Source: Hormiphora californensis | Taxonomy: Eukaryota > Animalia > Ctenophora | Length of the DNA: 64,000 nucleotides | Direction of reading: 5' to 3' | Assembly (NCBI GenBank): GCA_020137815.1 | Contig: CM035351.1 | Coordinates: 2,728,001 to 2,792,000, forward strand | Shown here: positions 28,649 through 64,000 of the stretch, piece by piece | Position numbering within the stretch: position 1 is the stretch's first letter | Layout: every line of letters begins with the position of its first letter | Notes under the pieces: model-generated | What the model was told of the DNA's origin: nothing | What the model saw: the letters and a program-made list of their open reading frames with translations, nothing else | Databases searched by the model: none | Translations under genes and position numbers: made by a program

Positions 28649-28650
<2 letters not shown>

Positions 28651-28739
<89 letters not shown>
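28651..28739. repeat. (GA)n microsatellite
   Basis: Direct reading. Confidence 0.95.
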
Positions 28740-28742
<3 letters not shown>

Positions 28743-29034
28743 CATGTGTGAGATCGGTCAGCTCCCCTAATTTTTCATTAGCCCAACCCAACCAAACACC
28801 GTACTGCTGCAGCTGTATTGCCCTAGCCAACAGTTGCATTCGTAGAGTATTATGTGGCCTAAATATTCTTCACCTTTCTTAATTCGACCTATCAACTGCA
28901 GTAGACTATAGCCTTTCTGACACATCTCTTACATATTCTTGTTTTTGATAAGCTTGCTCGTTTTCCCCCGATTTTAACAAAAGTTTCTTACTGTTATAGA
29001 GTTTGTATTCGCGGATGGTGTAACTGCTTCCGTG

Positions 29035-32000
29035 ATGCATTTCTCGGTGGTGTTAGGGGTGCTCCTTTTAGGGGCATTCAGCCAGGATTTAAAAAGGTAC
29101 ATATAGTATAGGGGCATTCAGCCAGGTATCCTGAGGTACACAATATACTGCGACACCGCGTTGTATTGTGGTTTGTTGGGTGCTAAAATGTCGTATAGAA
29201 TCATAGAAAATGTCCGAAGTTGTATAGCCAAGTGGACTGGGGCTAAGTTAATGCAGACTTAAACTGTTATTTATCCCTGCAGGCAACACGGATTAGACGG
29301 CAGTGTCAAGTTCGTGGTATCGTCAGAGTCGATCGCAAGTAAGTCTTACCAGTCACGCTTGCATAACTATGACACATTCAACTCTCACTAAATCTGACCT
29401 CGGTATAGATTCATTTGATATTTAACTTTGAATTCCTTTACAGATTGCCGATATATTTTGTATCTTGAACCCAAGACTTATGAAGAAGCTGCAGAGACCT
29501 GTGCTAAGCTCCAAGATCGGGACTCACCCACAGGGCGGGGGCAGATCGCAGTTGCTGATAGCAAAACTAAGAACTCCGATCTCACGGGGCTCTTACAGCA
29601 TGCTTTCGGATATAAACTAAAGGTAGGTTCAATGAGATAAACAAAGACATATACACAAAGACACAGAAACTTACAACTGACAAAGAGAGACGGTAACGGA
29701 CAACTGCGACCCATTCCTATACGACAAACCTGGGACAAACCTATTACTGATTACGGAGATACGGACAAACGACAACGACAACGACACCCATTTTATATCG
29801 GTCCCTACATAGTCTTCTTCCCTTTTTGTTTAGAAAATCGACGGATCCGGATCTGGGGATCGCCAAAAGTATAAGCCTGACCGCCGGGTAAAAACCTCAC
29901 CCAACCTCATGATCACAAATAATTATACCCGCATGAAGAAATTATTTTCATATTGTTTGCATGGTTTTGAATGAGAGAGTCTTTGTTTCACAGTGTGCAG
30001 GTTTCATCCAATATATATTATGTGTGTTTTGCATGCGGCCCTCGCATGGTAGCTACACATCCGCTGTGCATGACACAGGAAGCTACTGCACTTTTCAGGC
30101 ATCACAATTTATCCCCCCTCTCCATCCAGGTCTCTTATGCCCGTAAAACTGACTGGGTATGGCTCGGCCAGACCCTGAAGGACGGTGCCTGGAGGGATCA
30201 CAGTGGGCAGGAAGTCAGGTATTCAAGCTGGGAGCCTGGTCAACCTGATAGTAGGAGTAGCAATGGGAAGTACCAGACCTCAATCAGGCTAGGAAAACAT
30301 GGACAGTGGGATGATACTTTTGATGATAAAAAACATCCGTTCATCTGTACTCACACAGGTTTGATAAGAGTTTGATTAGAGACAACTAATTGCAATTGGA
30401 ATGCTAAAGAGTAAAGTGTATTTTCGTTATACTTCGGACATGTTTCATCCTCTAACTTCACTCCCCCTCTCTCCCAGAGCATTTCATCTACTCTGACACT
30501 AAGGTCACCTGGAGTGAAGCCATCAACTACTGTGACTTTGGAGGCATGACCCTGGCCCATGATTTGAATCCCAGCGAGAACGTCGCCATTGTAAAACTAG
30601 CCCGAGAGAAGTCTCCGCTTGATGATCTGGGTGTTGCCCATCCCTACCTAAACAGGAACTGGGCCTGGATCGGTGCCAGTGATAACTATACTGAGGGAGC
30701 GTGGAGGTGGACAAAGGGCAGCAAGATCTACTACAATAACTGGGAGAAATCACAGCCAGACAACTACGAACAAGGTATGACTTAGGCTTTTTAGCTTTCA
30801 TGAAATCATCCCTTTATCCTTCTATAGCCTATATATTGTCTATTGAAGTGCATTGTATTATACAAGTAAAGTGAACCCCTGGCATTAACCACCTTTTCTT
30901 TTTAGATTATATCAGGGCATTAACCACCTTTTCTTCTTAGATTATATCAGGGGATTAACCACCTTTTCTTCTTAGATTATATCAGGGGAGTGAATACCAC
31001 TGGACAGCATTTTGCTTCCATCAGCAAGCTGACCGGTGGCTGGGACGATAGCTTCGGAACCCGAAGTGTAAGTGAATCCACAAGTATCTATCATCTTGAT
31101 CTGACGTTGTTTAGTTTGACCCTTCACTCCAAAGGATACAAACTATCACAGTTCAGAAGTTCTAACAATTCCCCTATTACATCACTACATCAGCGAGAGT
31201 ACGTGTGTATGTGTGAGGAGAATGCTTTCGTTATGCCCGAGATTGAAGAGGAGATGCAGGATATGCTCGAGAACCACACCGCCATCTGGGAGGAAAAGAA
31301 ACAGGCCATGGCCAATTCTGCCTCGGATAAAAGTGAAAACCTTCCCCCACCGGAGTGTGCTGGTAAGTGAAAGAAATAGGAAATTTACCCTTTGAAAGTG
31401 AACAACCAATTATTAACACGCTTTTTCCACAGTGACCAAGTACTTTGCATTTGCGGATAAGGTGACGTGGGCTGATGCTAAATCGAGGTGTGAGGCGAGG
31501 CAGATGACTCTCGCCAAGATCAGCTCCCTGAGAGACAACTTTGATGCTACTCAAGCTGTCAACAAGTTTCGCTCCGGTTACTATGAGCGGCATGACCCAA
31601 TACTTACAGTGATGGGAACTGGGTGAGTGGTTTAGTTTGTGCAAGTCTGTAATCGGGCTGACCATTGGTCAGGAATTGCTCCGCCAGAGTGCCAGACAAG
31701 ACAGCTCGTTTAACTCATCTCTATATTTTATCAGTTCTGGATTGGACTGACCGACATTCAAAAGGAGGGCAAATTCAAATGGACGGATGGTAGCGATGTG
31801 GACTATGCCAACTGGGGAATCAACCAGCCGGACAACCTTCGAGTCTCTGACTACAGTTCCCGTGGTCAGCACTTTGTAGCGGTCCACAAGCTCCTCCGGT
31901 ACTGGGACGATAGTGACGGCCAGAAGAAGCTGGCCTTCCTCTGTGAGTGTCCTGGGTGGGAGTCAGAGGAAGATATGGAACCCACTGGAACACCCGAGAC

Positions 32001-32742
32001 CCCCGAGGATGGAGTACGGTCAGCTGCTGTTCAGGCTGCTCCCCAGGCCAAGGGAAAACGGTTCATTTACTACCCAGTTGCATCTTCTTTCTGGAAGGCC
32101 CAGAGTAGGTGTGTAAACTCGGGAGACAATCTGGCGTGCCCATCTAATGCCCGGCAAAACGAATTTATCGCTAATCTCATTCGGGGAAACACTTGGCTTG
32201 GTGTACTTGACTTCATGGAGGGTCAGTGGAAGTGTTCTAGTTCGGAGGAGTTAACTTACACCAACTGGGGCCTCAACCAACCCGACAACAAGGTATTTGA
32301 GTCATGTGACGGTCTATCTATGAGTTCAACAGTTTTATCTCTCTCCATAACTCCAAACGGTTTAAGGAGGGACATCGAACGTCTAAACATAATTAATTAC
32401 CTCTAATCACAGGATGGTATGTACGGTAGGAAGGATGCCGACTTTGCAGTAATGAGACACAAGATTGGGTCAGATGAACATGGTGCCTGGTTTGATCAGG
32501 GATCCATGACCAACCTCGATGATTATAGCTTCGATTTTGTATGCGAGTCAGGTACATATAACCAACTTGATCTACCGAACCGTCATAATAAAATGTGGTG
32601 TAGCAACAATCCTAAACTAATTCCGACGGAGAGTTCTTTGTTTCATTTAGATGATCATTTCTTATCTGACTCAATTTTTGTTTCAGAGTGTATGGTAGGA
32701 GAAGAGGGATGTATTCCTAACGACCCCTCTAAAGCGGAGTAA
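29035..32742 (+). CDS. Secreted protein with four tandem C-type lectin domains (11 exons); either a short isoform or the 5' part of the giant gene
   Basis: Signal peptide MHFSVVLGVLLLGAFSQ; WLG/WIG motifs; QPD in all four domains; WDD in three, WFD in the fourth. Exon phases are consistent. Confidence 0.9.
30881..30986 (+). repeat. 35-bp tandem triplication of a 3' splice site
   Basis: ggcattaaccaccttttctt(t/c)ttagattatatcag x3. Confidence 0.9.
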
Positions 32743-33208
32743 GTGTTCCCATGACAACGAACTATCACCATGACGACGAACTGTCACCATGACGACGAAC
32801 AGATGACAACACTGACAAACAAACAAACAGACACTGAAACAAAGACAGTTATTTTAGGACATGACGGGGTGTGAATGGGAATTTTTAGCACTTACTAAAC
32901 TCTTTATGTTTTTTGTATTTTCTAACCGATGTAAATATATTATCAACTTGCCAACAGTTGACAAGCGTGTGTGACATTTGTAAACAATAACAAAATGACT
33001 CTAACAAGACGCATAAAACTACCGAACTTATGGTAACAAGGCTGATCGAGTGACCTCATTCCACGGACGGATTACTGAATCTCTCAACTGACAACTTGAT
33101 CGAGTCTATTTCTAGAAACAACCAAACCTACCACATTTAGCAACAACCATACAGTATTACACCATCAAAACAACAACAGATAGCCTAATAACTTGCCACG
33201 TTACGCAG

Positions 33209-36200
33209 GAGGTTTGAGGGAGTAACAGGACTAAGGGGACCGGGGTACACCACCTACCTGAGTTACCTAGCGGGAGGTGGACGGCGGGTGGTCCGACGGG
33301 ACTTGGATAACGGGCAGGACCTGAGGGAGAGTCCCATTGGTGAGGGTGCCAGGGTTGTGGCAGCAGACAGCAGGTCTGTCTACCTTCACAGTGGACAACA
33401 CTGTCATCAGAAAACCCATCGCACGAGCAGGTAAGTGTAAAAGCAGCTGAGGTGTACTCACTGAATAGCTTTGGTAAAGTCTGACCAAATGGCCATCGCA
33501 TTATATGCCTTATTAGGTTACTCGGAGCGATTATATACAGTACCGGACGCTAAGGCCGTCACTGTGTGTCCAAAGACACGAATGATGTTTTACGTTTCCC
33601 GGGAGGGGAAGCTGAATCGAATGACTCTAGCGGAGAAAAACGAAGAAACCATCTTCACCGATATCTCTGATGCTGATAAGATCATCCTTGATTCCTGGAA
33701 AGGGTAGGAATACATCCTATTTTTGGGGTAGCTAATGCGTACCAATTCTCATACCCTACCGGAGTATTAGACGTTATAGTCCAACCTTGAACTTATCATA
33801 ATCCAGTGATCTCTCTCTTTTCTTGGTTTGGTAACGTCTCTTTATATTTTAGTCGAGTGATATGGAGTTACGGTAAGGGAGCCAACAGGAAATTAGCGTA
33901 TGGCAATGTTGACGGTAGCCCTGTTGCCGAAGACAAGCCCTTCTACTCATACAGTGTGGGAGAATTCACTTCGTGGTGCTATGACCCCATCCGACGAGTC
34001 ATCTACTTCTACTCTGTACGTACAAAAGTTAACGAGGGGTTTGGTGCGGTGGCGAAATGCGGAGCGTTGGTGGTGTTAGCGTTTGGTCTGACAACATTTT
34101 ATTCGTTGTTCATCATTTTGTGAATTTAGCATGTAATCTTTAATTGCATTTTAGCCGAGCCGAGGACAAGTACTGAGCATCAATGCGTTCACTGCTGCAA
34201 GTGATCCTCAGCCTCGCGAAGTCATGGCTCTAGCGGCTGCTGATAAACCCGTCTCGCTCTTTTACAACAAAGGTACGGTGATAAAATCAGATGAACAACA
34301 AGTTTATTGGCCTCCCAGTAACTAATCCTGGATAAGTTAACCACCGGAGTAGATTCTCCCCTCTTCATAGTAACAGCCTCGTAACCTCTGAATGTATATT
34401 CTAGGTCGCCTGTACTACACTAAAGAAGGCTCCCTCCGATACCGAGTCCTCTCATCTGGTGTGGACTCCTTCCTCCTTGCCGATAAGGACATCTCAGATG
34501 TATCTGTGGTCCAGGGTTCCAGGCCATTCGCCCGAGAACCCCGGGAGTACATGGTGGTGGGAACACGAGATGGCATGACTGCCGCACCCCTCCTTGCTCC
34601 CTCTCAACAGACCCTGGCACTACCTGCAAAGGGGCGATGGCACCAGGTGGATGCTCGACAAGGATTTGTCTACTACGAACGGGGAAATGCCATCTACAGG
34701 AGGTCTCTGAACGAAAAGGCCGGAGAAGAGACGAGAATTGTTGGCTCGAACAGTATCGGTGATTTCTATCTGGATACTGCCTCGCAGAAAATCTATATCT
34801 TGGATAATGAGCTACAGGAGATCTATAGGTTCAACTTGAATAACCAGGAGGCAGGACTTATCAAGGTTTACACTGGACTTAGACCTCCACGACGCATGAC
34901 TGTCAATGATAGGTGAGTACATTACCCGTCCACATATGATGATATCTCCTTCCGGCTTCCATCAAGGTGGTCAAAGGGAAAAACAATGATTTAATTGTTT
35001 TGTTAAACTGTTTTTGTTGGTAGGTTTGTATACTGGACGGAGGGAAGTGGCAAGAAAGCAAGGCTGATGTTGGGTGATATGGAAAATAAAAACTACAAGA
35101 TCCTTGTTTCTTCCCCACTCATTGATGAACCTGAGCTCCTTGCGTTCTCCGAAACCGACGGATATCTATATTTCACTGACAAGGCTAATGAGAAAACTGT
35201 AAAACGAGTCAAACCTTCGAACGGTGAGTGGGTCCAAAAGAACATGGGGTGTGGCTGATAAATTAAACCTGAATTCAAAATTTTAAGTGGTCAAAGACTA
35301 ATAAATTAACTAATCTGGATTCACAATTACAGGCTTGTTGAGAACTGTTGAAAATACATCTGCCAAGGTTGTGAGTTTGGTTGCCAGGGGTGATGCCGTC
35401 TACTGGACTCTCGAGAATGGGGAAGTTTACAAATATGATCCCATCCTAAGGGAGAGTGTTCTTTTCAGGTAAAATCTTACACCCTTCATACCCGGGTACT
35501 TTTTATAAGTACATAATGGTCAAATATCAGTCAGTGTAGGTGAAAGTTCCAGGGCCAGATAGAATTGAATCCCTTGTTATAACGTTTAATTAAAACAATC
35601 CTCCTCTAGAGAGTTTGAGGAGCCCCCGATGGGACTGGAGGTATACCAATCCACCAATCCTCCCCGACCTGCCCCCATGGTCCTGCTGAATGACTTCACT
35701 ACTGTAACAGCCATGGATGTATCCAACCCCTCCCGAACCTTGCCCGTGGGTGGTTCCATGGTCCAGAAAGCTGTGGTATACCCCTCAAGAAACCCTTCAC
35801 TTTACTTTATTAAGGGAAACAGACTGTTCCGAAGGCAATTGTGTAAGTAGAAATTGGGTGATATTGTAATATCACAATTCGTTTCATTTTTTTCGGTTAG
35901 GTTTATTTCAGTTTATTACAGTAAGGTATAAACAAAACATTGTTTTCCTCAGATTCCCCACTGGACCCACCTACTCAAGTTTCTGATCTTCATGTTATTG
36001 ACATTGCTCTCATCGGGGACAAACTCTACCTGTTGACTGCTCGTGAGGTCTCTCAGATGGATCCTAGGACAGGAGTTGTGAAAGTTCTTTACAGCCAGAT
36101 CAACCGTCCTGGATTCCTTGCTGTTAACCCATTCAATAAGTAAGTTACCATGGTTACCAATCCAGTATACCATAGTAAACCATAGTTACCGATACAACTA

Positions 36201-39200
36201 GTTTTGTTTCCACTGTCTCACCCAACACTAACCCGCCTACTAGGAACATTTACTGGACTGAGGACGGGACGAGGATGTACAAGGGCGACCCTGACAAGAG
36301 CACCAAGTCCCAAGTTGCCAGCTACAGCGGCACCCCCGGTCCCATGGCCTTCTGCCGGATGTCCAAGCGGCTCTACTTTGTTGATGGAATGGTTGTGAAG
36401 TACCTAATGGATGGTGATGTCCAAGAGACAAGTCTACAGACTGATAAGATGTCCATCACCTCTCTGAAGGTGGTTCCAAACTACCTTCTATACACACTCA
36501 AGGGCGAGACAATGATCAGACAGTTCAACCCAAGGACGGGTCAGCGGTCTCTCTTCATGATGGAGACTCCCGCACAGGTGGCAGCAGTTTACCCCATCAA
36601 ACAGGCCCCTGAAGGTAAAAGTTTGATGTTCTCCATGATATTTTTATTTTGTCATTATCTAACTAACAAGGCCTGAATATATATTGCCGCTGGAGACACT
36701 GATAGTTCGAAGAAGCCAATATATCTAACACTCTATTATATCCCTGTTCAGCCCGTGAAAGAGTTGTATACTCGCTCTATCCTGACGGAGCGGTGATTGA
36801 GACTGACCAGAGTACGGGACGAAGTGAGACGATCCCACTGACGAGAGAGCCCGTCCAGGCTGCCTGTGATGGATCCAGAGCGGGGTATCCTCTTCCTGGC
36901 CACACCCACGGGTATCCGCCGATACGAAAACATACAGCAAGGTGAGAGGAGCCCTGCACTGGGTAAACAAACATGCATTCAATAGATCATCATGTTAGTG
37001 ATAGCCAAAGAAACAAAACAATGGTTAAATAGATCAGGATTTATAGATACTATTTAGATCTGGATCTTTGCTTTTTGAAGGAGCAGAAAAATAATATATG
37101 ATGTTTCATACAAATTCATTCCATACCCTTCTTCCTTTCAGGTGCCCGGGGACAACGAATTTCCACTGTTGGAACAGTCGGAGGGCTCGCTCTACGCTTC
37201 AACCGTCTCTACTACACTGACACCTATGGGGGCACGGTCAATGTCATGAACTACGCTGGTAACGATCATCGAGTCCTGGCTGACTCCCTGGAGGCACCTG
37301 GAGCAGTTGCTGTCAGCAGTGGGGGCATTTACTTCATCCACTCTTCCTATCCCCGACAAATCAGCAGGGTAACAGGATCAGATAACGAGGTGGTTGATGT
37401 GGTCTCAACAGAGAGTGATCCTCTGACCCTCCTGGTGCAACCCTACTCTGAAGATGTGTACTACACGGATAACGAGAATACTCAGATTAAACGCCTGCCC
37501 AGTGGTTCTGATGTGCCGGAGGTAGTCTTTACACAGAACGAGGGAGTGGCAGGATTAACCCTGGGACCCAGGAACACCCTTGTGTTTGGTAGCGGCAAGA
37601 ATGGTCCAGTGCGGAGTTACAGTGGTATCTCTAAACAGGTGTTCTCCCTTCCCCAGCAACACCCCAGAACATGGCCTCTTGCTGCTGGATACAGGCCAAA
37701 CAACCGTAAGTTGTTTTGAAAAACACTTTTTTTTCATGTTTTGAAAAACACTTTACTTGGCCTGCCAATAAGAATGGGTGATTATATGGTCTTATTTTAA
37801 ATAAGAATATATATAGCATGGCCTTATTCCTCAAAAGCAATACAAATAATAATTTCATACACAACTTATTACTATACGTCATCCTTTATCCCACAGGTCA
37901 GACCCAGTTCTACATGTTCCAAGATGGAGATGATATCGTGAAACAGGCTATCGCTGCTCCCTACCTAACCCAGAGGATCTCCCGACCAAACACCGCCATG
38001 ATACGCATGGATTCCCTCAGTGGAACCCTTTACAGACTGGACTCCTCCCGAACCACCATCCTTGCAGAACCAGCCGAGTTGGACGGCGAATCATCCGTTG
38101 CCCTGGTTGAGGTTAGAGCTGCAGGAGGGATCACTGATTTCCAGGTTGATGGATGGAACGGTAGGATCTACTGGATCGATTCGAGCACCAACCAAATCCA
38201 TTTCAAATCTCTGGGAGGAACAAACTCCGCCTCAGTCCTCTACCGGGGTCTCAGATCACCAAACAAAATGGCCCTGGCCCTCGACACACGTCAGGTGTTT
38301 TGGTCAGGGGGCGACCAGATCTTCCAGGGTGCTCTCGATGAAAAGTTGTACGTGACCCTGCCTGAGAAACTGACCGGTACACCTACCTCCATGGAATATG
38401 ACCCTGTGAGCCAGCGGTTGTTCCTGGTGTTGCCACGAGATGGGGCTACCGGTAGTAAGGTGATAGCGGTTGATGTAGCGAACAAGGAACAGACTGAGAT
38501 CTTTGTTCATCCCCATGCTATTACCGACTTTGCACCCCTGACAAGGAGCACCTTCCTGTTCTCGGATAAGGAGGTCAGTGCAGACACGTGTTAACTGTTT
38601 GTACTGTATTTGTTGTAGGGTGAAAACTCACTATTTGGACTCGGTGTTAGTACAATCTTTCTCTAAACTTAACCAGAAGCAACCTGATTCTAAACATTTA
38701 TTACAGGGCGTCAAGTCGCTGAACGTTGAAACTGGAGAAGTCTTCCTCAAGAGGTCTGGCATTGCTCCTACCGGGTTCGCACGATATCTACCCAACCAGA
38801 ATAGACGAAACGGTAATATTAGTCACTCGACTAGTTACAGCGCCTTTAAATTGATGTCACCAGCAGCATCTCTTAACAAATCAAAATATTAAAACCCCTT
38901 CTTTCTGTTCAGACAAGTTCCCAACGTATGTTGTCTACACCCTCCCTGAGGAAGTGGTTATCCAGAACACTGCCAACAAACTTGATAGGACCATCATGTC
39001 CAGGGACGGGGTGTCTCTTGTCTCCCCCGACCCCATCACAAAGACTCTGTACTACATCAAGAGAACGAACGGCATCAACGCCATTCATAGAGATCAGGAC
39101 GGTACGTCTGTAGTTTCTGAAAAGATCTCATCTGTGATATTATTGTATGTAATGTATAACGCATTATTTATCCCAATTTTAGATAAGCCTCAAGCTCTCG

Positions 39201-51200: not shown

Positions 51201-54200
51201 ACCCCTCAAGGGTCAGTTAGATGTTTAGTACTTAGCCCGATAGTAAAACAAAAACTGACCGTCTTAAACACCCAAACTAAGATTAGGTTAAATTGCGATT
51301 TGCGTTAGATTGAAATTTTTTCACTATCAGTCTCTATAGAATGAGGGCATGCTAATACAGACTCCACAGGAAACTACTATGGATAGAAGGAAGTGGACGA
51401 GAACGATCTTTGGTCAGTGGATCACCAAATCGTGATCCAGTCACTAAGATCCTCAGCTACCCTGCCATAAGGGGAACTGAAAGCTCTGTCATGTATCTTC
51501 CATCGACCAAGCGATACTACATTGTCAGGTAATAGAATGTTGTAACCAATCTATGTTATCAGTCCAAATTCTGCGTAGAAGAATAATTTTTAATAATTCG
51601 TATTTTCAGGGATTCCCAATTATTGGAAGTTGATCCGGAAACCCAAGAAACTAACGTCATAGCTCCTGAAAACGTCGCCGCTGCTAAGACAGTCGGGCAA
51701 AGATACATTGCCTACGCTACAGACAGTGAGATTATCTTACGAGATATCAAAACGGGATCAGAGAGGGTCATTTCTACCACCAGGTTCCCAGCAGAAAGTA
51801 TCAGTCTGATAGACTTACCAGAGGCCATCGAGAGTGAGAAAGAAATGGGACCAGATGACATGGGCGAAGATGGGGATGAAAGGAAGCCTCAATTCCGATA
51901 CATAGTTTCCAAATCTGGAGAAGTTGTCAGGGTGGATATGTCTGGAAACCGAGAAACCATCTCTGTACCTAGGGGAGGTAGTTTGCCTGTGGTTGATCCT
52001 ACAGACGATACCCTGTACTACGTTCTAGTCGGAAGGAACATAATGAAGGTTCAGCCATCCATCGACGGACAACAGGCCCTCGTCATGCGAGAAGGAAGTC
52101 AAATCAACGCCATAAAGATCCATCCTAAGACTAGGCGACTGTACTACAGTGACCAAGGTCGTGGCGTTGTTGGTTATGTCAACCTAGACACTTTGGAAAG
52201 CACCATTATCTACGAAGGACTGAGCAACCCTACTATCGTGTCTGTTGATCCTAAAGCAATGGTCGTGAAAGAGAGCGATTCCCTTGGCCAAGAAACCGTC
52301 AGCACTATTTCCACGAATGAAGATCAGCCAAGGAAAGAATCTGCACCGACTGAACTTGTTGGAGCAGACGAGGCAGCGACCACCCGACCCGGAGAGTTTG
52401 TCTACTTGAAGGATGGAATGCTCTACTCTTTTGTTCAAGGAAGGCGACCTCAATTGATCTCAAGAGATGTTACAAGCTTCATTGTTCGTCGAGGAAAGAT
52501 CATCTACGCAAAGAGACCATCCTACTCGTCTACAACTGAGATCGTGATGTATCAGCCGTCCACAGGAGAGACAAGGGTTGTTCAAGAAACGGAGGAAGAG
52601 GTTGCCGACATGACCACCTTCGTTATTGCCGACCCAACCGAAGATTCCATGGACAAGGAAGACGATATGGACAGAGAAGACGATATGGACAAGGGAGACG
52701 ATATGGACAGGGAAGACGATATGGATAAGGAAAACAGTTCCACAATGCCCCAGTATCGCTATATCGTTACCGGAAATGGAGAAGTTGTCAGGGTGGATAT
52801 GTCTGGAAACCGAGAAACCATCTCTGTACCTAGGGGAGGTAGTTTGCCTGTGGTTGATCCTACAGACGATACCCTGTACTACGTTCTTGTCGGAAGGAAC
52901 ATAATGAAGGTTCAACCATCCATCGATGGACGGCAGGGTCTTGTTATGCGAGGAGGTCGTCAAATTAATGCTTTAAAGATCCATCCCAAGACTAGGCGAC
53001 TGTACTACAGTGACCAAGGTCGTGGCGTTGTTGGTTATGTCAACCTAGACACTTTGGAAAGCACCATTATCTACGAAGGACTGAGCAACCCAACTATCGT
53101 GTCTGTTGATCCTAAAGCAATGGTCGTGAAAGAGAGCGATTCTCGCGGCCAAGAGACCGTTAGCACTATTTCCACGAATGAAGATCAGCCAAGGAAAGAA
53201 TCTGCACCGACTGAACTTGTTGGAGCGGACGAGGCAGCAACCACCCGACCCGGAGAGTTTGTCTACTTGAAGGATGGAATGCTCTACTCTGTAGTTCAAG
53301 GAAGACGACCTCAACTGATCTCCAGGGACGTTACCAGCTTCGTTGTTCGTCGAGGAGTCATCGTGTACGCAAAGAGACCATCTTACTCGTCTACAACTGA
53401 GATTGTGATGTATCAGCCGTCCACCGGAGAGACAAGGGTTGTTCAAGAAACGGAGGAAGACGTTGCCGACATGACCACCTTCGTTATTGCCGACCCAATC
53501 GAGGATTCCATGGACAAGGAAGATGATATGGATGAGAAAGACGGTATGGACAGAGAAGAAGATATGGACAGGGAAGACCCTATGGACAAGGGAGACGACA
53601 CAGACAAGGGAGACGATATGGATAGGGAAGACGATATGGACAAGGAAGACGATATGGACAAGGAAGACAGTTCCACAATGCCCCAGTATCGCTATATCGT
53701 TACCGGAAATGGAGAAGTTGTCAGGGTGGATAAGTCTGGAAACCGAGAAACCATCTCTGTACCTATGGGAGGAAGTTTGCCTGTGGTTGATCCCACAGAC
53801 GATACCCTGTACTACGTTCTTGTCGGAAGGAACATTATGAAGGTTCAGCCATCCATCGATGGAAGGCAGGGTCTTGTTATGCGAGGAGGACGTCAAATCA
53901 ACGCCATAAAGATTCATCCCAAGACTAGGCGACTGTACTACAGTGACCAAGGTCGGGGCGTTGTTGGTTATGTCAACCTAGACACTTTGGAAAGCACCGA
54001 TTATCTACGAAGGACTGAGCAACCCAACTATCGTATCTGTTGATCCTAAAGCAATGGTCGTGAAAGAGAGCGATTCACAGGGCCAAGAAACCGTCAGCAC
54101 TATCTCCACGAATGAAGATCAGCCAAGAAAAGAATCTGCACCGACTGAACTTGTTGGAGCCGACGAGGCAGCGACCACCCGACCCGGAGAGTTTGTCTAC

Positions 54201-57200
54201 TTGAAGGATGGAATGCTCTACTCTGTTGTTCAGGGAAGGCGACCTCAATTGATCTCAAGAGATGTTACCAGCTTCGTTGTTCGTCGAGGAGTTATCGTGT
54301 ACGCAAAGAGACCATCTTACTCGTCTACAACTGAGATTGTGATGTATCAGCCGTCCACAGGAGAGACAAGGGTTGTTCAAGAAACGGAGGATGAGGTTGC
54401 CGACATGACCACCTTCGTTATTACCGACCCAATCGAGGATTCCATGGACAAGGAAGATGATATGGATGAGAAAGACGGTATGGACAGAGAAGAAGATATG
54501 GACAGGGAAGACCCTATGGACAAGGGAGACGATATGGATAGGGGAGACGATATGGACAAGGAAGACGATATGGACAAGGAAGAAAACATGGACAGGGAAG
54601 ACGATATGGACAAGGAAGACAGTTCCAAATTGCCCCAGTATCGCTATATCGTTACCCAGAATGGTGAAGTTGTCAGGGTGGATATGTATGGAAACCGAGA
54701 AACCATCTCTGTACCGAGGGGAGGAAGTTTGCCTGTGGTTGATCCTACAGACGATACCCTGTACTACGTTCTTGTCGGAAGGAACATAATGAAGGTTCAA
54801 CCATCCATCGATGGACGGCAGGGTCTTGTTATGCGAGGAGGACGTCAAATTAACGCCATAAAGATCCATTCCAAGACTAGGACACTGTACTACAGTGACC
54901 AAGGTCGTGGCGTCGTTGGTTATGTCAACCTAGACACTTTGGAAAGCACCGTTATCTACGAAGGACTGAGCAACCCAACTATCGTATCTGTTGATCCTAA
55001 AGCAATGGTCGTGAAAGAGAGCGATTCTCGAGGCCAAGAGACCGTCAGCACTATTTCCACGAATGAAGATCGGCCAAGGAAAGAATCTGCACCGACTGAA
55101 CTTGTTGGAGCGGACGAGGCAGCTACCACCCGACCCGGAGAGTTTGTCTACTTGAAGGATGGAATGCTTTACTCTGTTGTTCAGGGGAGACGCCCTCAAT
55201 TGATCTCCAGAGATGTTACCAGCTTCGTTGTTCGTCGAGGAGTTATCGTGTTCGCAAAGAGACCATCTTACTCGTCCACGACTGAGATTGTGATGTATCA
55301 GCCGTCCACAGGAGAGACAAGGGTTGTTCAAGAAACGGAGGAAGAGGTTGCCGACATGACCACCTTCGTTATTACTGACCCAACCGACGATTTCATGGAT
55401 AAGGAAGATGATACGGATAAGGGAGAAGATATGGACAAGGAAGACGATATGGACAAGGGAGACGACACGGATAAAGAAGACGATACGGACAGGGTAGACG
55501 ATATGGACAGAGAAGACGATACGGACAAAGAAGACGATATGGACAAGGGAGACGATATGGACAAGGAAGACGATATGGATAAGGACGACAGTTCCACAAT
55601 GCCCCAGTATCGCTATATCGTTACCCAGAATGGTGAAGTTGTCAGGGTGGATATGTATGGAAACCGAGAAACCATTTCTGTACCGAGGGGAGGAAGTTTG
55701 CCTGTGGTTGATCCTACAGACGATACCCTGTACTACGTTCTTGTCGGAAGGAACATAATGAAGGTTCAACCATCCGTCGATGGAAGGCAGGGTCTCGTAA
55801 TGCGAGGAGGACGTCAAATCAACGCCATAAAGATCCATCCCAAGACTAGGCGATTGTACTACAGTGACCAAGGTCGTGGCGTTGTTGGTTATGTCAACCT
55901 AGACACTTTGGAAAGCACCATTATCTACGAAGGACTGAGCAACCCAACTATCGTATCTGTTGATCCTAAAGCAATGGTCGTGAAAGAGAGCGATTCCCGT
56001 GGCCAAGAGACCGTCAGCACTATTTCCACTAGTGAAGATCAGCCAAGAAAAGAATCTGCACCGACTGAACTTGTTGGAGCGGACGAGGCAGCGACCACCC
56101 GACCCGGAGAGTTTGTCTACTTGAAGGATGGAATGCTCTACTCTGTTGTTCAGGGGAGACGACCTCAATTGATCTCCAGAGATGTTATTAGCTTCATTGT
56201 TCGTCGAGGAGTCATCTTGTACGCAAAGAGACCATCCTACTCGTCTACAACTGAGATCGTGATGTATCAGCCGTCCACCGGAGAGACGAGGGTTGTCCAA
56301 GAAACGGAGGAAGAGGTTGCTGACATGACCACATTTGTTATTATCGACCCAATCGAGGATTCCATGGACAAGGAAGACGATATGGACAAGGAATACGAGA
56401 TTGACAATGAAAACGATATGGACAATGGAGACGATATGGACAAGGAAGATGATATGGACAGGGAAGACGATATGGACAAAGGAGACGATACGGACAGGGA
56501 AGATGATTTTGATATTCCCGATGATACCGAGGCTCAAAAGTTCCAAGGATTTGGACGATACATTATCTTTTCCAAGGGAGGTTCCCTGGTTATCCGTGAT
56601 ACTGTTACTATGGCAACGGAAACATTCTCTCGTGTTGGAGCTAAAAGTTACGTGTATGATCCCTCTGAAGATACCTTCTACTTCCTCACCACGGCTGCAT
56701 TAGTGAAGGAGCCGCGGGGCGGAGAACTTGAATATGTATACCGCGGTATGTCACGTGATTTGATCCACGACAAGACCACCGATTCACTCTACTTTGCTTC
56801 AATGTACACCGGTGGAGTTTTGAGATACGATATCAAGACTGGGGAAATTGAGAAAACTTTCTCTGGGGTTGTCCAGAATCTGAATCTTTATGCCCCTGGA
56901 TCACTTCTCTGGTCTCAAGGTCGAGGTGAAGCTACTCAACTGTCCACAAGTAGCGGTGATACCTTGATTGAAGATGGTCTAGATGGAACTGAGAAAGCCT
57001 TCGTGTACCTTCCTTCCAAGAAGGTTGTTCTCTACCTGAAACCAATTGGAGATCTCATCAAGTACGAGGACGGTGAGAGAGAGACCTTTAAACAGGGTGT
57101 CCAAGCTGTCACAACCAGAGGAGACCGAATTCTGATCCTTTACACTGACGGCTCTTTGTATAGTGTCGATGTGGGATCAGGTGAAGAAACCCGGCAGCCA

Positions 57201-60200
57201 GTAACCCTTGAGGAAGGTGTAGACGATATTTCGGGATTGGGAGCCATTGGTGATGCCCCTGCCGTGGTCTTCTACATAGACAGGAACGGCTACTTCCAAA
57301 GGTCAGATAAGGAAGGTGCGTCCCGAGGAAGGCTTTACTACACAGCTACTTCACCCAATGGTGTGCTATACAGTGTCTCGGCGGATAAATCATCTGTCGT
57401 TAAGCAAGGCGTAGATCAGTATAATCCGGAATATGTCGTCACTGGACGTGGAGAGATCTCGGACATGGTTGTTCGGGGAGAGAATGATTGGGTATTCTAC
57501 TCTGACAAGAAGGAGGGAACCCTCTATGGGTTTAGGTTCCTTGACAACATAGTTGAGAGAGTCCTCTATCAAAATCTGGAGGAGCCATCTGTACTGGATG
57601 CTGATATTGTATCAAGGTGAGTAACTATTAATTTTTGATGTTTCTATTTATAGATTACGAACATAATTATTTAGAATTTTGGTATTCTTTTTGCAGCCGA
57701 TAACAGAATTAATTCTCAATATTTTACCAGGGAGTTGATTTGGATTCAGGGAGCGGAAAGAAAAGCTAAGGTTATGCTTGGATCTGTATTTGGGACCACC
57801 CATTACAGCCCAGTTGCTGCTTACCCAACTGTAACTGGTACCGAAACCAGTATCCTTCTTCATCCCATAATTGAAAGTGGATTTATTATACTCCGTAATG
57901 GTGAATTGATCGAGTATGACCCTGTAAACAGGAAAGAGATTTCTTTGGCCAAAAGAGTCACTGCTGTCTCCAAATCCAAGGATGGAAAGATTTACTTTGC
58001 TGATGAACAGGGCCAGGTAAGTTAAAGATAATCAAATAAATAAAGTCCATATTTTCAACTGTTCACCCCTCGTTTTGTGTGCGGATTTGTTTTGTGCGTC
58101 TATCGCAAGTTAATCTGTGCTTGCACGTCAAAGAGATCAATTTCACACGTGCAAGAGTTTGCGGGTGAAAAGTTGAATAAAAATTCATTAGAACTTCATG
58201 AGTACTATTGCCCTTGGCATGTCTTTTGAAATTTATAATGAAGTAAAAGAATTTTCCTTTCAGGTATTTGAACTCGACTTCAAGACTGGAACTCACCGAT
58301 TTGTGACTACCCTTCCTGCCGGCGTATCTGACTTCCAGCTCTTCTTCGCCAACGACGTAGAGGAAGGTTCAACGGAACTCATTGGAACTGATGAAGATTC
58401 TAATGATGAGGAAGATACAACAAACAAGGGAGATGATATGGACAAGGGAGACGATATGGACAAGGAAGATGATATGGACAAAGAAGACGATATGGACAGG
58501 GAAGACGATATGGACAAGGGAGACAGTTCTACAACACCCCAATACCGCTATATAGTTACCCAGAATGGAGAAGTTGTCAGGGTGGATAGATCTGGAAACC
58601 GAGAAACCATTTCTGTACCGAGGGGAGGAAGTTTACCTGTGGTTGATCCTACAGACGATACCTTGTACTACGTTCTAGTCGGAAGGAACATTATGAAGGT
58701 TCAGCCAGCCGTTGATGGAAGGCAGGGTCTCGTAATGCGAGGAGGACGTCAAATTAACGCCATAAAGATCCATTCCAAGACTAGGACACTGTACTACAGT
58801 GACCAAGGTCGTGGCGTCGTTGGTTATGTCAACCTAGACACTTTGGAAAGCACCATTATCTACGAGGGACTGAGCAACCCAACTATCGTATCTGTTGATC
58901 CTAAAGCAATGGTCGTGAAAGAGAGCGATTCTCGGGGACAAGAAACCGTCAGCACTATTTCCACGAATGAAGATCAGCCAAGGAAAGAATCTGCACCGAC
59001 TGAACTTGTTGGAGCGGACGAGGCAGCTACCACCCGACCCGGAGAGTTTGTCTACTTGAAGGATGGAATGCTCTACTCTGTAGTTCAGGGAAGGCGACCT
59101 CAATTGATCTCCAGGGATGTTACCAGCTTCGTTGTTCGTCGAGGAGTGATTGTGTACGCAAAGAGACCATCCTACTCATCTACAACTGAGATCGTAATGT
59201 ATCGGCCGTCCACAGGAGAGACAAGGGTTGTTCAAGAAACGGAGGAAGAGGTTGCTGACATGACGAGCTTTGTTATCACCGACCCAACCGAAGATTCCAT
59301 GGACAAAGAAGACGATATGGACAAGGGAGAAGATATGGACAAAGAAGACGATACGGACAAAGAAGACAATATGGACAAGGGAGACGATATGGAAAAAGAA
59401 GACGACACAGACAAAGAAGACGATACAGACAGGGAAGACGATATGAACCAGGGAGACAGTTCCAAAATGCCCCAGTATCGCTACATCGTTACCGGAAATG
59501 GAGAAGTTGTCAGGGTAGATAAATCTGGAAACCGAGAAACCATCTCTGTACCGAGGGGAGGAAGTTTACCTGTGGTTGATCCTACAGACGATACCCTGTA
59601 CTACGTTCTTGTCGGAAGGAACATTATGAAGGTTCAGCCATCTGTCGATGGACGGCAGGGTCTTGTTATGCGAGGAGGACGTCAAATCAATGCCATAAAG
59701 ATCCATCCTAAGACTAGGCGACTGTACTACAGTGACCAAGGTCGTGGCGTTGTTGGTTATGTCAACCTTGACACTTTGGAAAGCACAATTATCTACGAAG
59801 GACTGAGCAACCCTACTATCGTGTCTGTTGATCCTAACGCAATAGTCGTAAAAGAGAGCGATTCTCGGGGACAAGAAACCGTCAGCACTATTTCCACTAG
59901 TGAAGATCAGCCAAGAAAAGAATATGCACCGACTGAACTTGTTGGAGCGGACGAGGCAGCTACCACCCGACCCGGAGAGTTTGTCTACTTGAAGGATGGA
60001 ATGCTCTACTCTGTAGTTCAGGGAAGGCGACCTCAATTGATCTCCAGGGACGTTACCAGCTTCGTTGTTCGTCGAGGAGTGATTGTGTACGGAAAGAGAC
60101 CATCCTACTCGTCTACAACTGAGATCGTGATGTATCGGCCGTCCACAGGAGAGACAAGGGTTGTGCAAGAAACGGAGGAAGAGGTTGCTGACATGACCAC

Positions 60201-63200
60201 CTTCGTTATTACCGACCCAACCGAGGATTCCATGGACAAGGAAGACGAGATGGACAAGGGAGAAGACATGGACAAAGAAGACGATACGGACAAAGAAGAC
60301 AATATGGACAAGGGAGACGATATGGAAAAAGAAGACGACACAGACAAAGAAGACGATACAGACAGGGAAGACGATATGGACCAGGGAGACAGTTCCAAAA
60401 TGCCCCAGTATCGCTACATCGTTACCGGAAATGGAGAAGTTGTCAGGGTAGATAAGTCTGGAAACCGAGAAACCATCTCTGTACCGAGAGGAGGAAGTTT
60501 GCCAGTGGTTGATCCTACAGACGTACTAAACGTTCTTGTGGAAGGAACATTATGAAGGTTCAGCCATCCACAAGGACGGCAGGGTCTGTTATGCGAGGAG
60601 GACGTCAAATCAATGCCATAAAGATCCATCCAAGACTAGGCGACTGTACTACAGTGACCAAGGTCGTGGCGGGTTGGTTATGTCAACCTAGACACTTTGG
60701 AAAGCACCGTTATCTACGAAGGACTGAGCAACCCAACTATCGTATCTGTTGATCCTAAAGCAATGGTCGTAAAAGAGAGCGATTCCCGTGGCCAAGAAAC
60801 CGTCAGCACTATTTCCACGAATGAAGATCAACCAAGGAAGGAATCTGCACCGAATGAACTTGTTGGAGCTGACGAAGCAGCCACCACCCGACCCGGAGAG
60901 TTTGTTTATTTGAAAGATGGAATGCTCTACTCTGTAGTTCAGGGCAGACGACCTCAATTGATCTCTAGGGACGTTACCAGCTTCTTTGTTCGTCGAGGAG
61001 TCATCATGTACGCAAAGAGACCATCCTATTCGTCACAACTGAGATTGTGATGTATCAGCCGTCCAGGAGAGACGAGGGTTGTTCAAGAAAAGGAGGAAGA
61101 GGTTGTCGACATGACCACATTCGTTATTATCGACCCAACCGAGGATTCCATGGATAAGGAAGACGATATGGACAAGGGAGACGTATGGACAGGGGAGACG
61201 ATATGGACAGGGAAGACGATATGGATAGGGAAGACGATATGGACAAAGAAGACAGTTCCACAATGCCCCAGTATCGCTATATCGTTACCGGAAATGGAGA
61301 AGTTGTCAGGGTGGATAAGTCTGGAAACCGAGAAACCATCTCTGTACCTATGGAGGAAGTTGCCTGTGGTTGATCCTACAGACGATACACTGTACTACGT
61401 TCTAGTCGGAAGGAAATAATGAAGGTTCAGCCATCCATTGATGGACGGCAGGGTCTCGTAATGCGAGGAGGACGTCAAATCAACGCCATAAAGATCCATC
61501 CCAAGACTAGGCGACTGTACTACAGTGACCAAGGTCGTGGCGTCGTTGGTTAGTTCAACCTAGACATTTGGAAAGCACCATTATCTACGAAGGACTGAGC
61601 AATCCAACTATCGTGTCTGTTGATCCTAAAGCAATGGTCGTGAAAGAGAGCGATTCCCGTGGCCAAGAGACCGTCAGCACTATTTCCACGAATGAAGATC
61701 AGCCAAAGAAAGAATCTGCACCGACTGAACTTGTTGGAGCGGACGAGGCAGCGACCACCCGACCAGGAGAGTTTGTATACTTGAAGGATAGAATGCTCTA
61801 CTCTGTAGTTCAGGGAAGGCGACCTCAATTGATCTCTAGGGACGTTACCAGCTTCTTTGTTCGTCGAGGAGTCATCGTGTACGCAAAGAGACCATCCTAT
61901 TCTTCCACAACTGAGATTGTGATGTATCAGCCGTCCACCGGAGAGACGAGGGTTGTCCAAGAAACAGAGGAAGAGGTTGCCGACATGACCACCTTCGTTA
62001 TTATCGACCCAACCGAAGAGTCTATGGACAAGGAAGACGATATGGACAAGGGAGACGATATGGTAAAAGAAGAAGACACGGACAAAGAAGACGAAACGGA
62101 CAGGGAAGACAATATGGATAGGGAAGACGATATGGACAAGGAAGACAGTTCCACAATGCCCCAGTATCGCTATATCGTTACCGGAAATGGAGAAGTTGTC
62201 AGGGTGGATAAGTCTGGAAACCGAGAAACCATCTCTGTACCAAGGGGAGGAAGTTTGCCTGTGGTTGATCCTACAGACGATACACTGTACTACGTTCTAG
62301 TCGGAAGGAACATAATGAAGGTTCAGCCATCCATTGATGGACGGCAGGGTCTCGTAATGCGAGGAGGACGTCAAATCAACGCCATAAAGATCCATCCCAA
62401 GACTAGGCGACTGTACTACAGTGACCAAGGTCGTGGCGTCGTTGGTTATGTCAACCTAGACACTTTAGAAAGCACCATTATCTACGAAGGACTGAGCAAC
62501 CCAATTATCGTGTCTGTTGATCCTAAAGCAATGGTCGTAAAAGAGAGCGATTCCCGTGGCCAAGAAACCGTCAGCACTATTTCCACGAATGAAGATCAAC
62601 CAAGGAAGGAATCTGCACCGACTGAACTTGTTGGAGCTGACGAAGCAGCCACCACCCGACCCGGAGAGTTTGTTTATTTGAAAGATGGAATGCTCTACTC
62701 TGTAGTTCAGGGCAGACGACCTCAATTGATCTCTAGGGACGTTACCAGCTTCTTTGTTCGTCGAGGAGTCATCATGTACGCAAAGAGACCATCCTATTCG
62801 TCCACAACTGAGATTGTGATGTATCAGCCGTCCACCGGAGAGACGAGGGTTGTTCAAGAAACGGAGGAAGAGGTTGTCGACATGACCACATTCGTTATTA
62901 TCGACCCAACCGAGGATTCCATGGATAAGGAAGACGATATGGACAAGGGAGACGATATGGACAGGGGAGACGATATGGACAAGGGAAGACGATATGGATA
63001 GGGAAGACGATATGGACAAAGAAGACAGTTCCACAATGCCCCAGTATCGCTATATCGTTACCGGAAATGGAGAAGTTGTCAGGGTGGATAAGTCTGGAAA
63101 CCGAGAAACCATCTCTGTACCTATGGGAGGAAGTTTGCCTGTGGTTGATCCTACAGACGATACACTGTACTACGTTCTAGTCGGAAGGAACATAATGAAG

Positions 63201-64000
63201 GTTCAGCCATCCATTGATGGACGGCAGGGTCTCGTAATGCGAGGAGGACGTCAAATCAACGCCATAAAGATCCATCCCAAGACTAGGCGACTGTACTACA
63301 GTGACCAAGGTCGTGGCGTCGTTGGTTATGTCAACCTAGACACTTTGGAAAGCACCATTATCTACGAAGGACTGAGCAATCCAACTATCGTGTCTGTTGA
63401 TCCTAAAGCAATGGTCGTGAAAGAGAGCGATTCCCGTGGCCAAGAGACCGTCAGCACTATTTCCACGAATGAAGATCAGCCAAGGAAAGAATCTGCACCG
63501 ACTGAACTTGTTGGAGCGGACGAGGCAGCGACCACCCGACCCGGAGTCTTTATCTACTTGAAGGATGGAATGCTTTACTCTGTAATTCAGGGGAGACGAC
63601 CTCAATTGATCTCCAGGGACGTTACCAGCTTCGTTGTTCGTCGAGGAGTCATCGTGTACGCAAAGAGACCATCCTACTCGTCTACAACTGAGATCGTGAT
63701 GTATCAGCCGTCCACAGGAGAGACAAGGGTTGTGCAAGAAACGGTTGAAGATGTTGTCGATATGACCACCTTCGTTATTACCGACTCAACCGACGATTTC
63801 ATGGACAAGGAAGACGATATGGAAAAGGAAGACGATATGGAAAAGGAAGACGATATGGAAAAGGAAGACGATACTGATTTCCGTGGTGTTTCTCGATTTG
63901 AGTTTGTCATCGAATCTGGTGTTGTATACCGTATGCCACTTGGTCGGCCAGACCTGAAGGAAAGGCTTCCCATCCCGGGAACCTACCCTGTTTTCTCCAA
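33209..64000 (+). CDS. Giant multi-beta-propeller (YWTD/LDLR class B-like) protein with thyroglobulin type-1 domains and acidic repeats; 3'-partial; probably continuous with 29035-32738
   Basis: Dozens of GT-AG exons with LYWTD, IYWTE, LYYTD, IYWID, LYFTD and LYYSD blades and D-P-x-x-x-x-L/I-Y motifs. Giant exons 51610-57616 and 58264-end. Several 1-nt indels. Confidence 0.85.
43409..43597 (+). other. Exon encoding thyroglobulin type-1 domain 1 of the giant protein
   Basis: PCS...[14 protein letters not shown]...CECVNGMGE...NC, six Cys, phase 1-1 exon. Confidence 0.85.
43608..43760. repeat. (ATTCA)n intronic microsatellite
   Basis: Direct reading. Confidence 0.95.
44272..44459 (+). repeat. 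39-bp tandem repeat, ~5 copies, spanning an exon end and donor site
   Basis: at(c/t)ctgaatacatgaccatcattgacaagtatgtagttc. Confidence 0.95.
45063..45279 (+). other. Thyroglobulin type-1 domain 2 of the giant protein
   Basis: VC...[15 protein letters not shown]...[14 protein letters not shown]...EC. Confidence 0.88.
48794..48902. mobile_element. 109-bp MITE with 15-bp TIRs and an 8-bp TSD (hAT-like)
   Basis: caggaaccgaccgaa ... ttcggtcggttcctg; ttagttac at 48786-48793 and 48903-48910. Confidence 0.92.
51890..56510 (+). repeat. Coding tandem array 1: five ~0.86-0.97-kb units (propeller + acidic linker)
   Basis: Q(F/Y)RYIV unit starts at ~51890, 52751, 53683, 54636 and 55605. Confidence 0.92.
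58430..63876 (+). repeat. Coding tandem array 2: six units of the same repeat
   Basis: QYRYIV unit starts at ~58540, 59473, 60406, 61269, 62162 and 63042; 18-bp gacgatatggacaaggaa-type minisatellite linkers. Confidence 0.92.

Follow-up and report, generated by a model that had tools for sequence, protein, structure and literature searches.

The 64,000-nt stretch of the Hormiphora californensis genome analysed here (C2:2,728,001-2,792,000; hereafter the window, whose coordinates are used throughout and extended downstream) contains the 5′ two-thirds of a giant gene on the + strand. The gene is transcribed, spliced and selectively constrained. In the reading that we favor, with a probability of roughly 0.6, it encodes a secreted, unanchored lectin-propeller protein, which would provide the tentacle with a multivalent extracellular scaffold and would not be colloblast glue.

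The gene starts with the ATG at 29035 and ends with a stop codon at ~80,216, ~16 kb past the end of the window. The whole model consists of ~80 exons and ~11,900 residues (roughly 1.3 MDa), of which ~8,690 residues fall within the window, with the frame still open at 64000. Between 29035 and 51700 the exons can be spliced into a path without stop codons, most of whose introns measure 100-250 nt, and a second such path leads from 63036 to the stop codon at 80216. From its N-terminus, the product is composed of a signal peptide, four C-type lectin domains (CTLDs), about two dozen six-bladed propellers with interspersed thyroglobulin type-1 (TY-1) domains, and a distal lectin-rich part. Besides the signal peptide, no hydrophobic 19-mer was found in the whole model, and there is no transmembrane or glycosylphosphatidylinositol (GPI)-like segment.

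Transcript evidence was obtained from contigs of four seawater RNA libraries (X1-X4, of which X2 is an oligo-dT library), which are 95-99+% identical to the window over 29001-35000. These metatranscriptome contigs provided 13 GT-AG joints. A first splice model with strict site thresholds missed known junctions, and a second one was forced through the transcript-supported joints. Pfam scans covered all + strand open frames of at least 60 residues. The searches and structure predictions used single exons or open frames, and the joined spliced model was used only for length, composition and hydrophobicity. The 40 kb downstream of the window were examined as well. The parts of the gene within the window are as follows.

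29035-29096, + strand: exon 1, with the start codon and the signal-peptide-like MHFSVVLGVLLLGAFS/QDLK; splice 29096>29283 in an X3 contig
29283-29338, + strand: exon 2, linker between the signal peptide and CTLD1; joints 29096>29283 and 29338>29444 in an X3 contig
29444-30358, + strand: CTLD1 (exons 29444-29622 and 30130-30358), motifs QPD and WDD; Pfam Lectin_C, 29.8 bits
30478-31362, + strand: CTLD2 (exons 30478-30774, 30976-31067 and 31194-31362) plus an acidic linker; Pfam Lectin_C, 32.7 bits
31433-32292, + strand: CTLD3 (31433-31622 and the start of 31735-32292) and the N-terminal half of CTLD4; Pfam Lectin_C
32413-32738, + strand: C-terminal half of CTLD4 (32413-32551) and exon 11 (32687-32738); joints 32292>32413 and 32551>32687 (X2, X3)
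32739-33208, + strand: 470-nt intron linking the lectin and propeller parts; X3 contig 12
33209-51784, + strand: diverged, EGF-less six-bladed YWTD-type propellers in ~40 short exons; iterated profile
43409-43597, + strand: TY-1 domain 1; PF00086, 31.5 bits (cut-off 20.6), Cys-rich window
45141-45275, + strand: TY-1 domain 2, within exon 44888-45863; PF00086, 44.9 bits, Cys-rich window
51884-56342, + strand: array A, five near-identical units, each a 248-residue propeller with a (DDMDK)n acidic linker
56556-58016, + strand: one to two diverged propellers that separate array A from array B; intron at 57617-57730; profile, 1.3 unit-equivalents
58534-63779, + strand: array B, six units
63880-64000, + strand: start of the next diverged propeller, where the frame leaves the window; profile

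The lectin part and its junction to the propellers

The ATG at 29035 opens MHFSVVLGVLLLGAFSQDLK, with a 13-residue h-region of mean Kyte-Doolittle value 2.31, and exon 1 is both transcribed and spliced. In the X3 contig over exon 1, 12 letters, ACTTTGTGTTTG, stand before 29055 (window 29043-29055) and differ from the genomic letters at this place. Their assignment as a spliced leader was rejected, since they differ from the published leader and the 14-mer that includes the next AG occurs once in the genome. A long dinucleotide microsatellite of the GA/RE type is located at 28600-28750, ~300-400 bp upstream of the start codon.

Lectin_C (PF00059) exceeds its cut-off of 22.6 bits in the open frames 29971-30372, 30456-30782 and 31714-32403, the last of which reaches 62.4 bits in two stretches. 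A local lectin profile places four domains at 29.4-32.6 kb and leaves 32.7-68.3 kb empty. The seawater contigs join the CTLD1 exons at 29622>30130 (X2) and 29887>30130 (X1), connect and assemble CTLD2 at 30358>30478 (three runs) and 31067>31194 (X4), and cross CTLD3 at 31622>31735. A 54-nt cassette exon of CTLD1 (29834-29887), which is in frame and adds KIDGSGSGDRQKYKPDRR, is present in the X1 contig and skipped in the X2 contig. The best alignments of CTLD1 are to the mannose receptor, CD23, collectin and aggrecan.

All four N-terminal CTLDs contain a QPD motif (EPGQPD, EKSQPD, GINQPD and GLNQPD). In the alignment to CD23 and the mannose receptor, the QPD of CTLD1 occupies the EPN/QPD site, opposite the EPT of CD23. 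The WND motif is replaced by WDD in CTLD1-3 and by WFD in CTLD4. As compared to CD23, EACV is changed to QTSI and WNDAFC to WDDTFD in CTLD1, and inspection of CTLD2-4 shows the Cys-free sequences WDDSFG, WDDSDG and WFDQGS. The cysteines of the C2-C3 inner disulfide are not present in the four N-terminal CTLDs, while C1 and C4 are kept. An earlier, preliminary description of the window had called these domains galactose-type; this putative specificity is drawn only from the QPD motif, the WND motif being altered and the loop disulfide missing.

Exon 11 encodes the post-lectin connector ECMVGEEGCIPNDPSKA and ends in GCGGA/GTAAGT, where a stop codon (TAA, 32740-32742) overlaps the donor site. X3 contig 12 (151 nt) follows the genome over 32462-32547 and then over 32683-32739, and its final eight letters, AGGTTTGA, correspond to 33210-33217, right behind the acceptor AG at 33207-33208. 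The splice 32738>33209 is of the GT-AG type, stays in frame and eliminates the stop codon. This octamer has one other + strand copy in the window, spanning the exon-intron boundary at donor 30358, but a join at that copy is implausible, because it would run backwards along the gene. Exon 12 opens directly with blade 1 of the first propeller, comparable to the start of a repeat unit, and the connector motif of exon 11 is the same as that preceding further domains downstream. The propeller part has neither a signal peptide of its own nor an early Met, the first in-frame Met being located within a blade. The lectin and propeller parts are probably one gene. A homologue search with lectin exon 9 returned only genomic, exon-sized fragments and no transcript-derived protein across the junction.

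The acceptor region is of the tandem NAGNAG type (CAG/GAG/, 33206-33212), and the match of an X1 contig begins exactly at 33212, after five unplaced letters. Use of the second AG would fit this contig and would give a form one codon shorter.

The propeller chain, the repeat arrays and the distal lectins

The iterated repeat-unit profile matches throughout 33.5-51.8 kb, between the arrays (56556-57170 and 57297-57599) and past the window. The number of propellers in 33209-51784 ranges from 9 by profile coverage (8.8 unit-equivalents, 4,056 residues) to ~15 by length. Spliced contigs confirm the joints 33703>33854, 34015>34155, 34272>34405 and 34912>35024 in this part. A single X1 contig of 1,160 nt spans both 34015>34155 and 34272>34405, and the exon at 35024 accounts for the tail of this contig that had remained unplaced.

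In the Pfam scan, Ldl_recept_b (PF00058) reaches its cut-off only in the open frame 35007-35255 (21.9 versus 21 bits), and the other propeller exons gave either no match or sub-threshold matches to SGL, DUF5050 and PQQ_2. AlphaFold2 predicted six-bladed structures of 23 strands both for the repeat unit 54630-55373 (248 residues; predicted local distance difference test score (pLDDT) 85.5, predicted template modeling score (pTM) 0.72) and for the diverged single-exon unit 49956-50666 (pLDDT 87.8, pTM 0.82). The best PDB matches of both models in Foldseek are the YWTD propellers of ApoER2, LRP6, LRP2/megalin, LRP4, LDLR and nidogen (1npe), and the template modeling (TM) score of 49956-50666 against LRP6 is 0.76-0.78. 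An exhaustive HMMER search of the unit 54630-55373 against 1.84 billion representative proteins yielded 47 hits at E<=1e-3, the named ones being LRP2-, LRP5- and LRP4-like proteins and a vitellogenin receptor. The best named phmmer hit of the unit is an LRP2-like protein (E 3.5e-14, 9 stretches). Ldl_recept_b is abundant in every large HMMER hit scanned, and PF00058 is found in 27 of the 30 nearest clusters of the ESM Atlas.

No EGF or LDLa match was found in any + strand open frame of at least 60 residues. Apart from the TY-1, TIL and lectin domains, the coding frames contain no 45-residue window with at least five Cys, and Cys makes up 0.39% of the propeller part and 0 of the sampled array stretch. 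Within the coding frames of the window, only the TY-1 domains, at 43.4 and 45.1 kb, are Cys-rich. They are situated near residues 2,750 and 3,150 of the model, and their Cys windows read C..G.F.P.QC......C.CV. In the same region, an intronic (TCAAT)31 microsatellite occupies 43608-43761, and a 39-bp x 4.8 tandem repeat at 44272-44459 would encode 13-residue copies if exonic.

Arrays A and B comprise eleven units of ~310 residues each, in blocks of five and six, with the acidic (DDMDK)n linkers encoded by 18/54-bp repeat arrays. The repeat unit was found nowhere else in the genome. The eleven units are 92-96% identical in protein. Among the eight intact units, the non-synonymous divergence (dN) is 0.029 and the synonymous divergence (dS) is 0.23, giving a dN/dS of 0.12. 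The three frame-broken units, with their indels ignored, display dN/dS values of 0.05-0.16 and no excess divergence. Given that the protein has remained nearly constant while the synonymous sites have drifted, the units were probably kept alike by selection for sameness and not by DNA homogenization. An intronic dispersed repeat of ~135-150 bp at 58040-58185, for which 46 genome matches were listed, including the window itself, has copies that are ~74-78% identical, and is probably a small non-autonomous mobile element.

The reference sequence contains several frame breaks. In the CTLD3 exon, two single extra bases are present, at 31567/31570 and at 31603. In the X2 and X3 contigs, one base is missing at each of the two places, and the X4 contig, which stops short of the second place, lacks the base at the first; with both bases left out, the exon is in phase with the one that follows. 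In exon 12, a shift of one base separates the phase of the strongest donor (33430) from that of the strongest acceptor (33517), and 33399-33430 read in the other frame (10 residues) gives a proper blade end; another extra reference base may thus be located near 33398. One extra base is found at 54000 in array A, at least 12 small indels fall within 60523-61570 in units 8 and 9 (60400-62010), and one further break is found at 62983 in array B. These breaks would represent assembly or haplotype faults and not gene decay, as the transcripts show for the CTLD3 case only. Since these single-base indels lie in coding exons, automatic annotation will fragment or truncate the gene.

Beyond the window, further propellers are followed by TY-1 domains at 66.3 and 68.0 kb (26.6 and 19.5 bits; cut-off 20.6), one lectin domain, two TIL domains at 69.0-69.3 kb, two lectin domains and a 2.7-kb intron. 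Past this intron, the frame encodes an acidic stretch with two propellers (73.1-75.0 kb), and then some eight further lectin domains, of which several are degenerate, together with (TTEKQPMA)13, before the stop codon. The downstream lectin domains, ~11 in all, score 26-38 bits with Lectin_C, and several keep all four Cys. The C-terminus is formed by a lectin domain ending in ASYICEYSE, followed by the stop codon, and minus-strand genes start from ~81 kb. The intron (70378-73104) is full of tandem repeats, and the splice 70377>73105 recreates the post-lectin 'CE-x-CDMATE' motif. The (TTEKQPMA)13 element is a Thr-rich, mucin-like tandem repeat at ~78.3-78.7 kb, between degenerate lectin domains in a 917-residue exon.

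The preliminary description had proposed a signal peptide, four CTLDs that splice in frame into the propeller region, a nearly Cys-free chain of YWTD-type propellers with no EGF or LDLa modules, TY-1 domains and acidic repeats. These would form a secreted beads-on-a-string protein of more than 8,000 residues, still open at 64000. This outline is borne out throughout: the signal-peptide-like start belongs to a spliced exon, Pfam and the local profile agree on the lectins, the propeller type is supported by the iterated profile, the two AlphaFold2 models and the LRP-family PDB matches, the junction by X3 contig 12 and the missing signal peptide of the propeller part, and secretion by the domain and anchor analysis. 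The glycan-binding tip that it envisaged would correspond to the N-terminal lectins, but lectin domains cap both ends. The transmembrane or GPI end for which it suggested checking the next window was not found up to the stop codon at ~80,216.

Relatives and known architectures

ENA fragments that match single exons are 87% (P0001), 98% and 74% (P0069 and P0070), and 67% (P0068) identical to the Hormiphora sequence. P0068 has 489 residues, which is the length of exon 49427-50895, and the same exon limit ends two of the ENA fragments. The fragments of 87%, 74% and 67% identity retain the exon limits of the Hormiphora gene. More distant ENA fragments (P0009, P0026, P0039 and others) retain the plan of acidic linker plus propeller, P0009 with GDDMDK repeats.

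Two gene models of Mnemiopsis leidyi, ML056965a and ML056959a, are located on one scaffold and are listed as 'tentacle candidates' (Babonis et al. 2018, PMC6278862). To belong to this set, a gene had to be found in no fewer than 70% of the ctenophore taxa sampled, Haeckelia among them, and to be missing from both the transcriptome and the genome of Beroe (PMC6278862). ML056965a (3,179 residues) contains three lectin domains at 401-739, YWTD six-bladed propellers up to ~3004, which are interrupted by a retrotransposon reverse transcriptase, and a TY-1 domain at 3045-3092; it belongs to cluster T1, whose expression peaks during tentacle morphogenesis (PMC6278862). In ML056959a (3,504 residues), the order is propeller, lectin, TIL-like domain and lectin, then a disordered acidic stretch of 217 residues, propellers and, up to the end, ~11 lectins (PMC6278862). 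For ML056959a, a spider glue factor and a fish lectin were also listed as weak BLAST matches (PMC6278862), of which the spider glue match probably arises from low-complexity sequence.

The published InterPro maps are collinear with the Hormiphora protein, ML056965a with its N-terminal part and ML056959a with its C-terminal part. Judging by domain order alone, the two models are probable orthologues. In Mnemiopsis, they are separate, fragmented annotations that were never described as a single giant protein. As a synteny marker, the 'Glypican' hit of ML056965a was uninformative, with no glypican near the H. californensis locus. In the literature on ctenophore matrix, lectin, LDL-receptor and nidogen proteins, we found no paper describing the giant protein. 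The architecture, which the preliminary description did not recognise, is not entirely new, as collinear models had already appeared in a published candidate list.

The YWTD propellers of LRP2, LRP4, LRP5/6, LDLR and ApoER2 share with those of Hormiphora the six-bladed fold (Foldseek TM 0.55-0.78) and the LYY/IYW-x-D blade motifs, the named hits ranging from E 3.5e-14 to 1e-6 at 28-31% identity. Unlike them, the Hormiphora propellers are not followed by EGF, LDLa or an anchor, contain almost no Cys, and are joined directly or via acidic disordered linkers. The hallmarks of the LRP family (LDLa repeats, a transmembrane helix and a cytoplasmic tail) were not found, and the Pfam scans, including those downstream of the window, gave no Ldl_recept_a. 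Nidogen (entactin), a matrix protein that is secreted, likewise combines TY-1 with a YWTD propeller, and 1npe is among the fold matches. The ~1,250 residues of nidogen hold a single propeller, EGF repeats and NIDO/G2 domains; no Pfam match to NIDO, G2 or EGF was found anywhere in the Hormiphora locus.

Tandem CTLDs are also found in the mannose receptor family and in the lecticans (aggrecan and versican), and the lecticans, like the Hormiphora protein, in addition possess a long, highly charged middle. In contrast to both, the Hormiphora protein lacks fibronectin-II, ricin-type, Ig and link domains, and its N-terminal CTLDs lack the C2-C3 disulfide; its middle is made of folded propellers, and is not a glycosaminoglycan-bearing region as in the lecticans. 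Mucins, Drosophila Dumpy and SCO-spondin are giant secreted beads-on-a-string repeat proteins. The Hormiphora protein resembles them in size class, secretion, the beads-on-a-string plan and a short mucin-like repeat, but its repeating bead is a YWTD propeller instead of an EGF/DPY, vWD, TSR or PTS repeat.

Alternative readings and proposed role

We propose that the protein would be secreted as a long, flexible, multivalent cross-linker. Its secretion is suggested by the propeller part, which has no signal peptide of its own and carries modules (TY-1, TIL and lectin) that depend on passage through the secretory pathway. As far as their motifs indicate, the calcium-dependent lectin clusters at both ends would tether the protein to galactose-type glycans. 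The propellers would present many protein-binding faces, and the acidic (DDMDK)n linkers may act as hydrated, cation-binding spacers. By analogy with Mnemiopsis, the site of action could be the tentacle, where the protein would be part of the matrix or of a gland secretion that is distinct from colloblast glue, since the probable orthologues are kept by tentacled ctenophores including Haeckelia, are lost by Beroe, and are expressed more strongly in tentacle morphogenesis.

Several points weigh against this proposal. The junction evidence amounts to 8-9 bases of one short seawater contig and a gene prediction in another species. X2 contig 8, from the oligo-dT library, continues through the donor at 32738 to 32808, and a short tetra-lectin form ending at the TAA at 32740 may be the main product. 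The simple splice model is the only source for the majority of exon limits in 35.5-51.6 kb and for every limit beyond 64 kb. This model evaded at least one frame break by a wrong donor (33339 instead of 33430), and the exon limits and the residue count are approximate, because it thereby circumvented a probable reference indel. The reference offers no single open frame, being interrupted at 31567-31603, probably at ~33398, and at 54000, 60523-61570 and 62983. The Mnemiopsis orthology was deduced from domain order only, by a comparison of InterPro coordinates. Finally, sugar binding, cation binding and cross-linking are predicted properties, and the tentacle is a proposed site.

The oligo-dT contig would also be expected if the locus held two or more genes, namely a secreted tetra-lectin ending at TAA 32740 and one or more propeller genes with spliced-leader trans-spliced 5′ ends at 33209 or later. 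Such trans-splicing is common in this species, the leader having been found in H. californensis on 56% or more of the Iso-Seq reads (PMC8527503), and the evidence linking the two parts is as short as stated above. However, the read-through in X2 could reflect either a short tetra-lectin isoform or unspliced RNA, and X1 likewise reads through the candidate donor 33339 (33339-33361); unspliced RNA may therefore be present in the libraries. A separate propeller gene would start without a signal peptide and with its first in-frame Met inside a blade, and would still carry TY-1, TIL and lectin modules. The cis-splice 32738>33209 in X3 contig 12, the connector motif in exon 11 and the union of lectins and propellers in ML056965a also speak against separate genes, an arrangement that we regard as unlikely, though worth keeping in view. 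The frame breaks could alternatively mean that the arrays are decaying, such that the product stops at the first break, at ~54,040 and ~5,500 residues in, and the remainder is a pseudogenized tail. The extra base at 54000, the indels in units 8 and 9 and the break at 62983 fit this view. Nevertheless, the broken units have dN/dS values as low as those of the intact ones, long open frames and recognizable domains persist downstream to 80.2 kb, and at the only transcript-covered break, in CTLD3, the contigs of three runs lack the reference's extra bases. The assembly was built from PacBio continuous long reads (CLR) and polished with short reads (PMC8527503), and in near-identical repeats such short reads may not place uniquely. 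Decay of the arrays is thus quite unlikely.

Being giant, secreted, lectin-rich and acidic, with a mucin-like stretch, the protein might instead belong to colloblast glue, to general mesoglea or mucus, or to the statolith matrix, roles that the preliminary description had put forward. Beroe, for its part, possesses mesoglea, mucus and statoliths. The BLAST hit of ML056959a to a spider glue protein points toward glue (PMC6278862), with the low-complexity origin suspected above, but the Mnemiopsis counterparts were assigned to the 'tentacle' and not to the 'colloblast' set, and they are kept in the colloblast-less Haeckelia. They are also absent from the Beroe transcriptome and genome, an argument that depends on the orthology and on the published orthogroup calls (PMC6278862). 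If the orthology holds, these distributions disfavor the colloblast glue, general mesoglea and statolith roles, and we give such a component only a slim chance. As for an endocytic or signaling receptor of the LRP type, the nearest sequence and fold relatives of the propellers are indeed LRP2, LRP4, LRP5, LRP6 and LDLR. With no LDLa, EGF or transmembrane segment, and with a C-terminus that consists of a lectin domain and then the stop codon, a receptor is highly improbable.

Within the tentacle reading, a bolder and rather doubtful idea may be entertained. The protein might be a tentacle-specific molecular spring of ~1.3 MDa, in which ~25-30 rigid propeller beads alternate with cation-sensitive acidic linkers between lectin anchors at both ends. 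It would then lend the tentacle matrix its extreme and reversible extensibility, and selection would hold the 11 units near-identical for regular packing or for a repeated partner.

In an assembly of 110,691,255 bases in 45 contigs (PMC11184263, Table 2), the gene may be among the largest of the 110-Mb genome. A chain of YWTD propellers that is free of EGF and LDLa and capped by lectin clusters represents an undescribed build for a giant extracellular protein, and its arrays offer a clean study case of repeat evolution, in which sameness would be due to selection and not to concerted evolution. If the link to Mnemiopsis is true, part of an uncharacterized tentacle gene set would be one molecule, lost together with the tentacles in Beroe.

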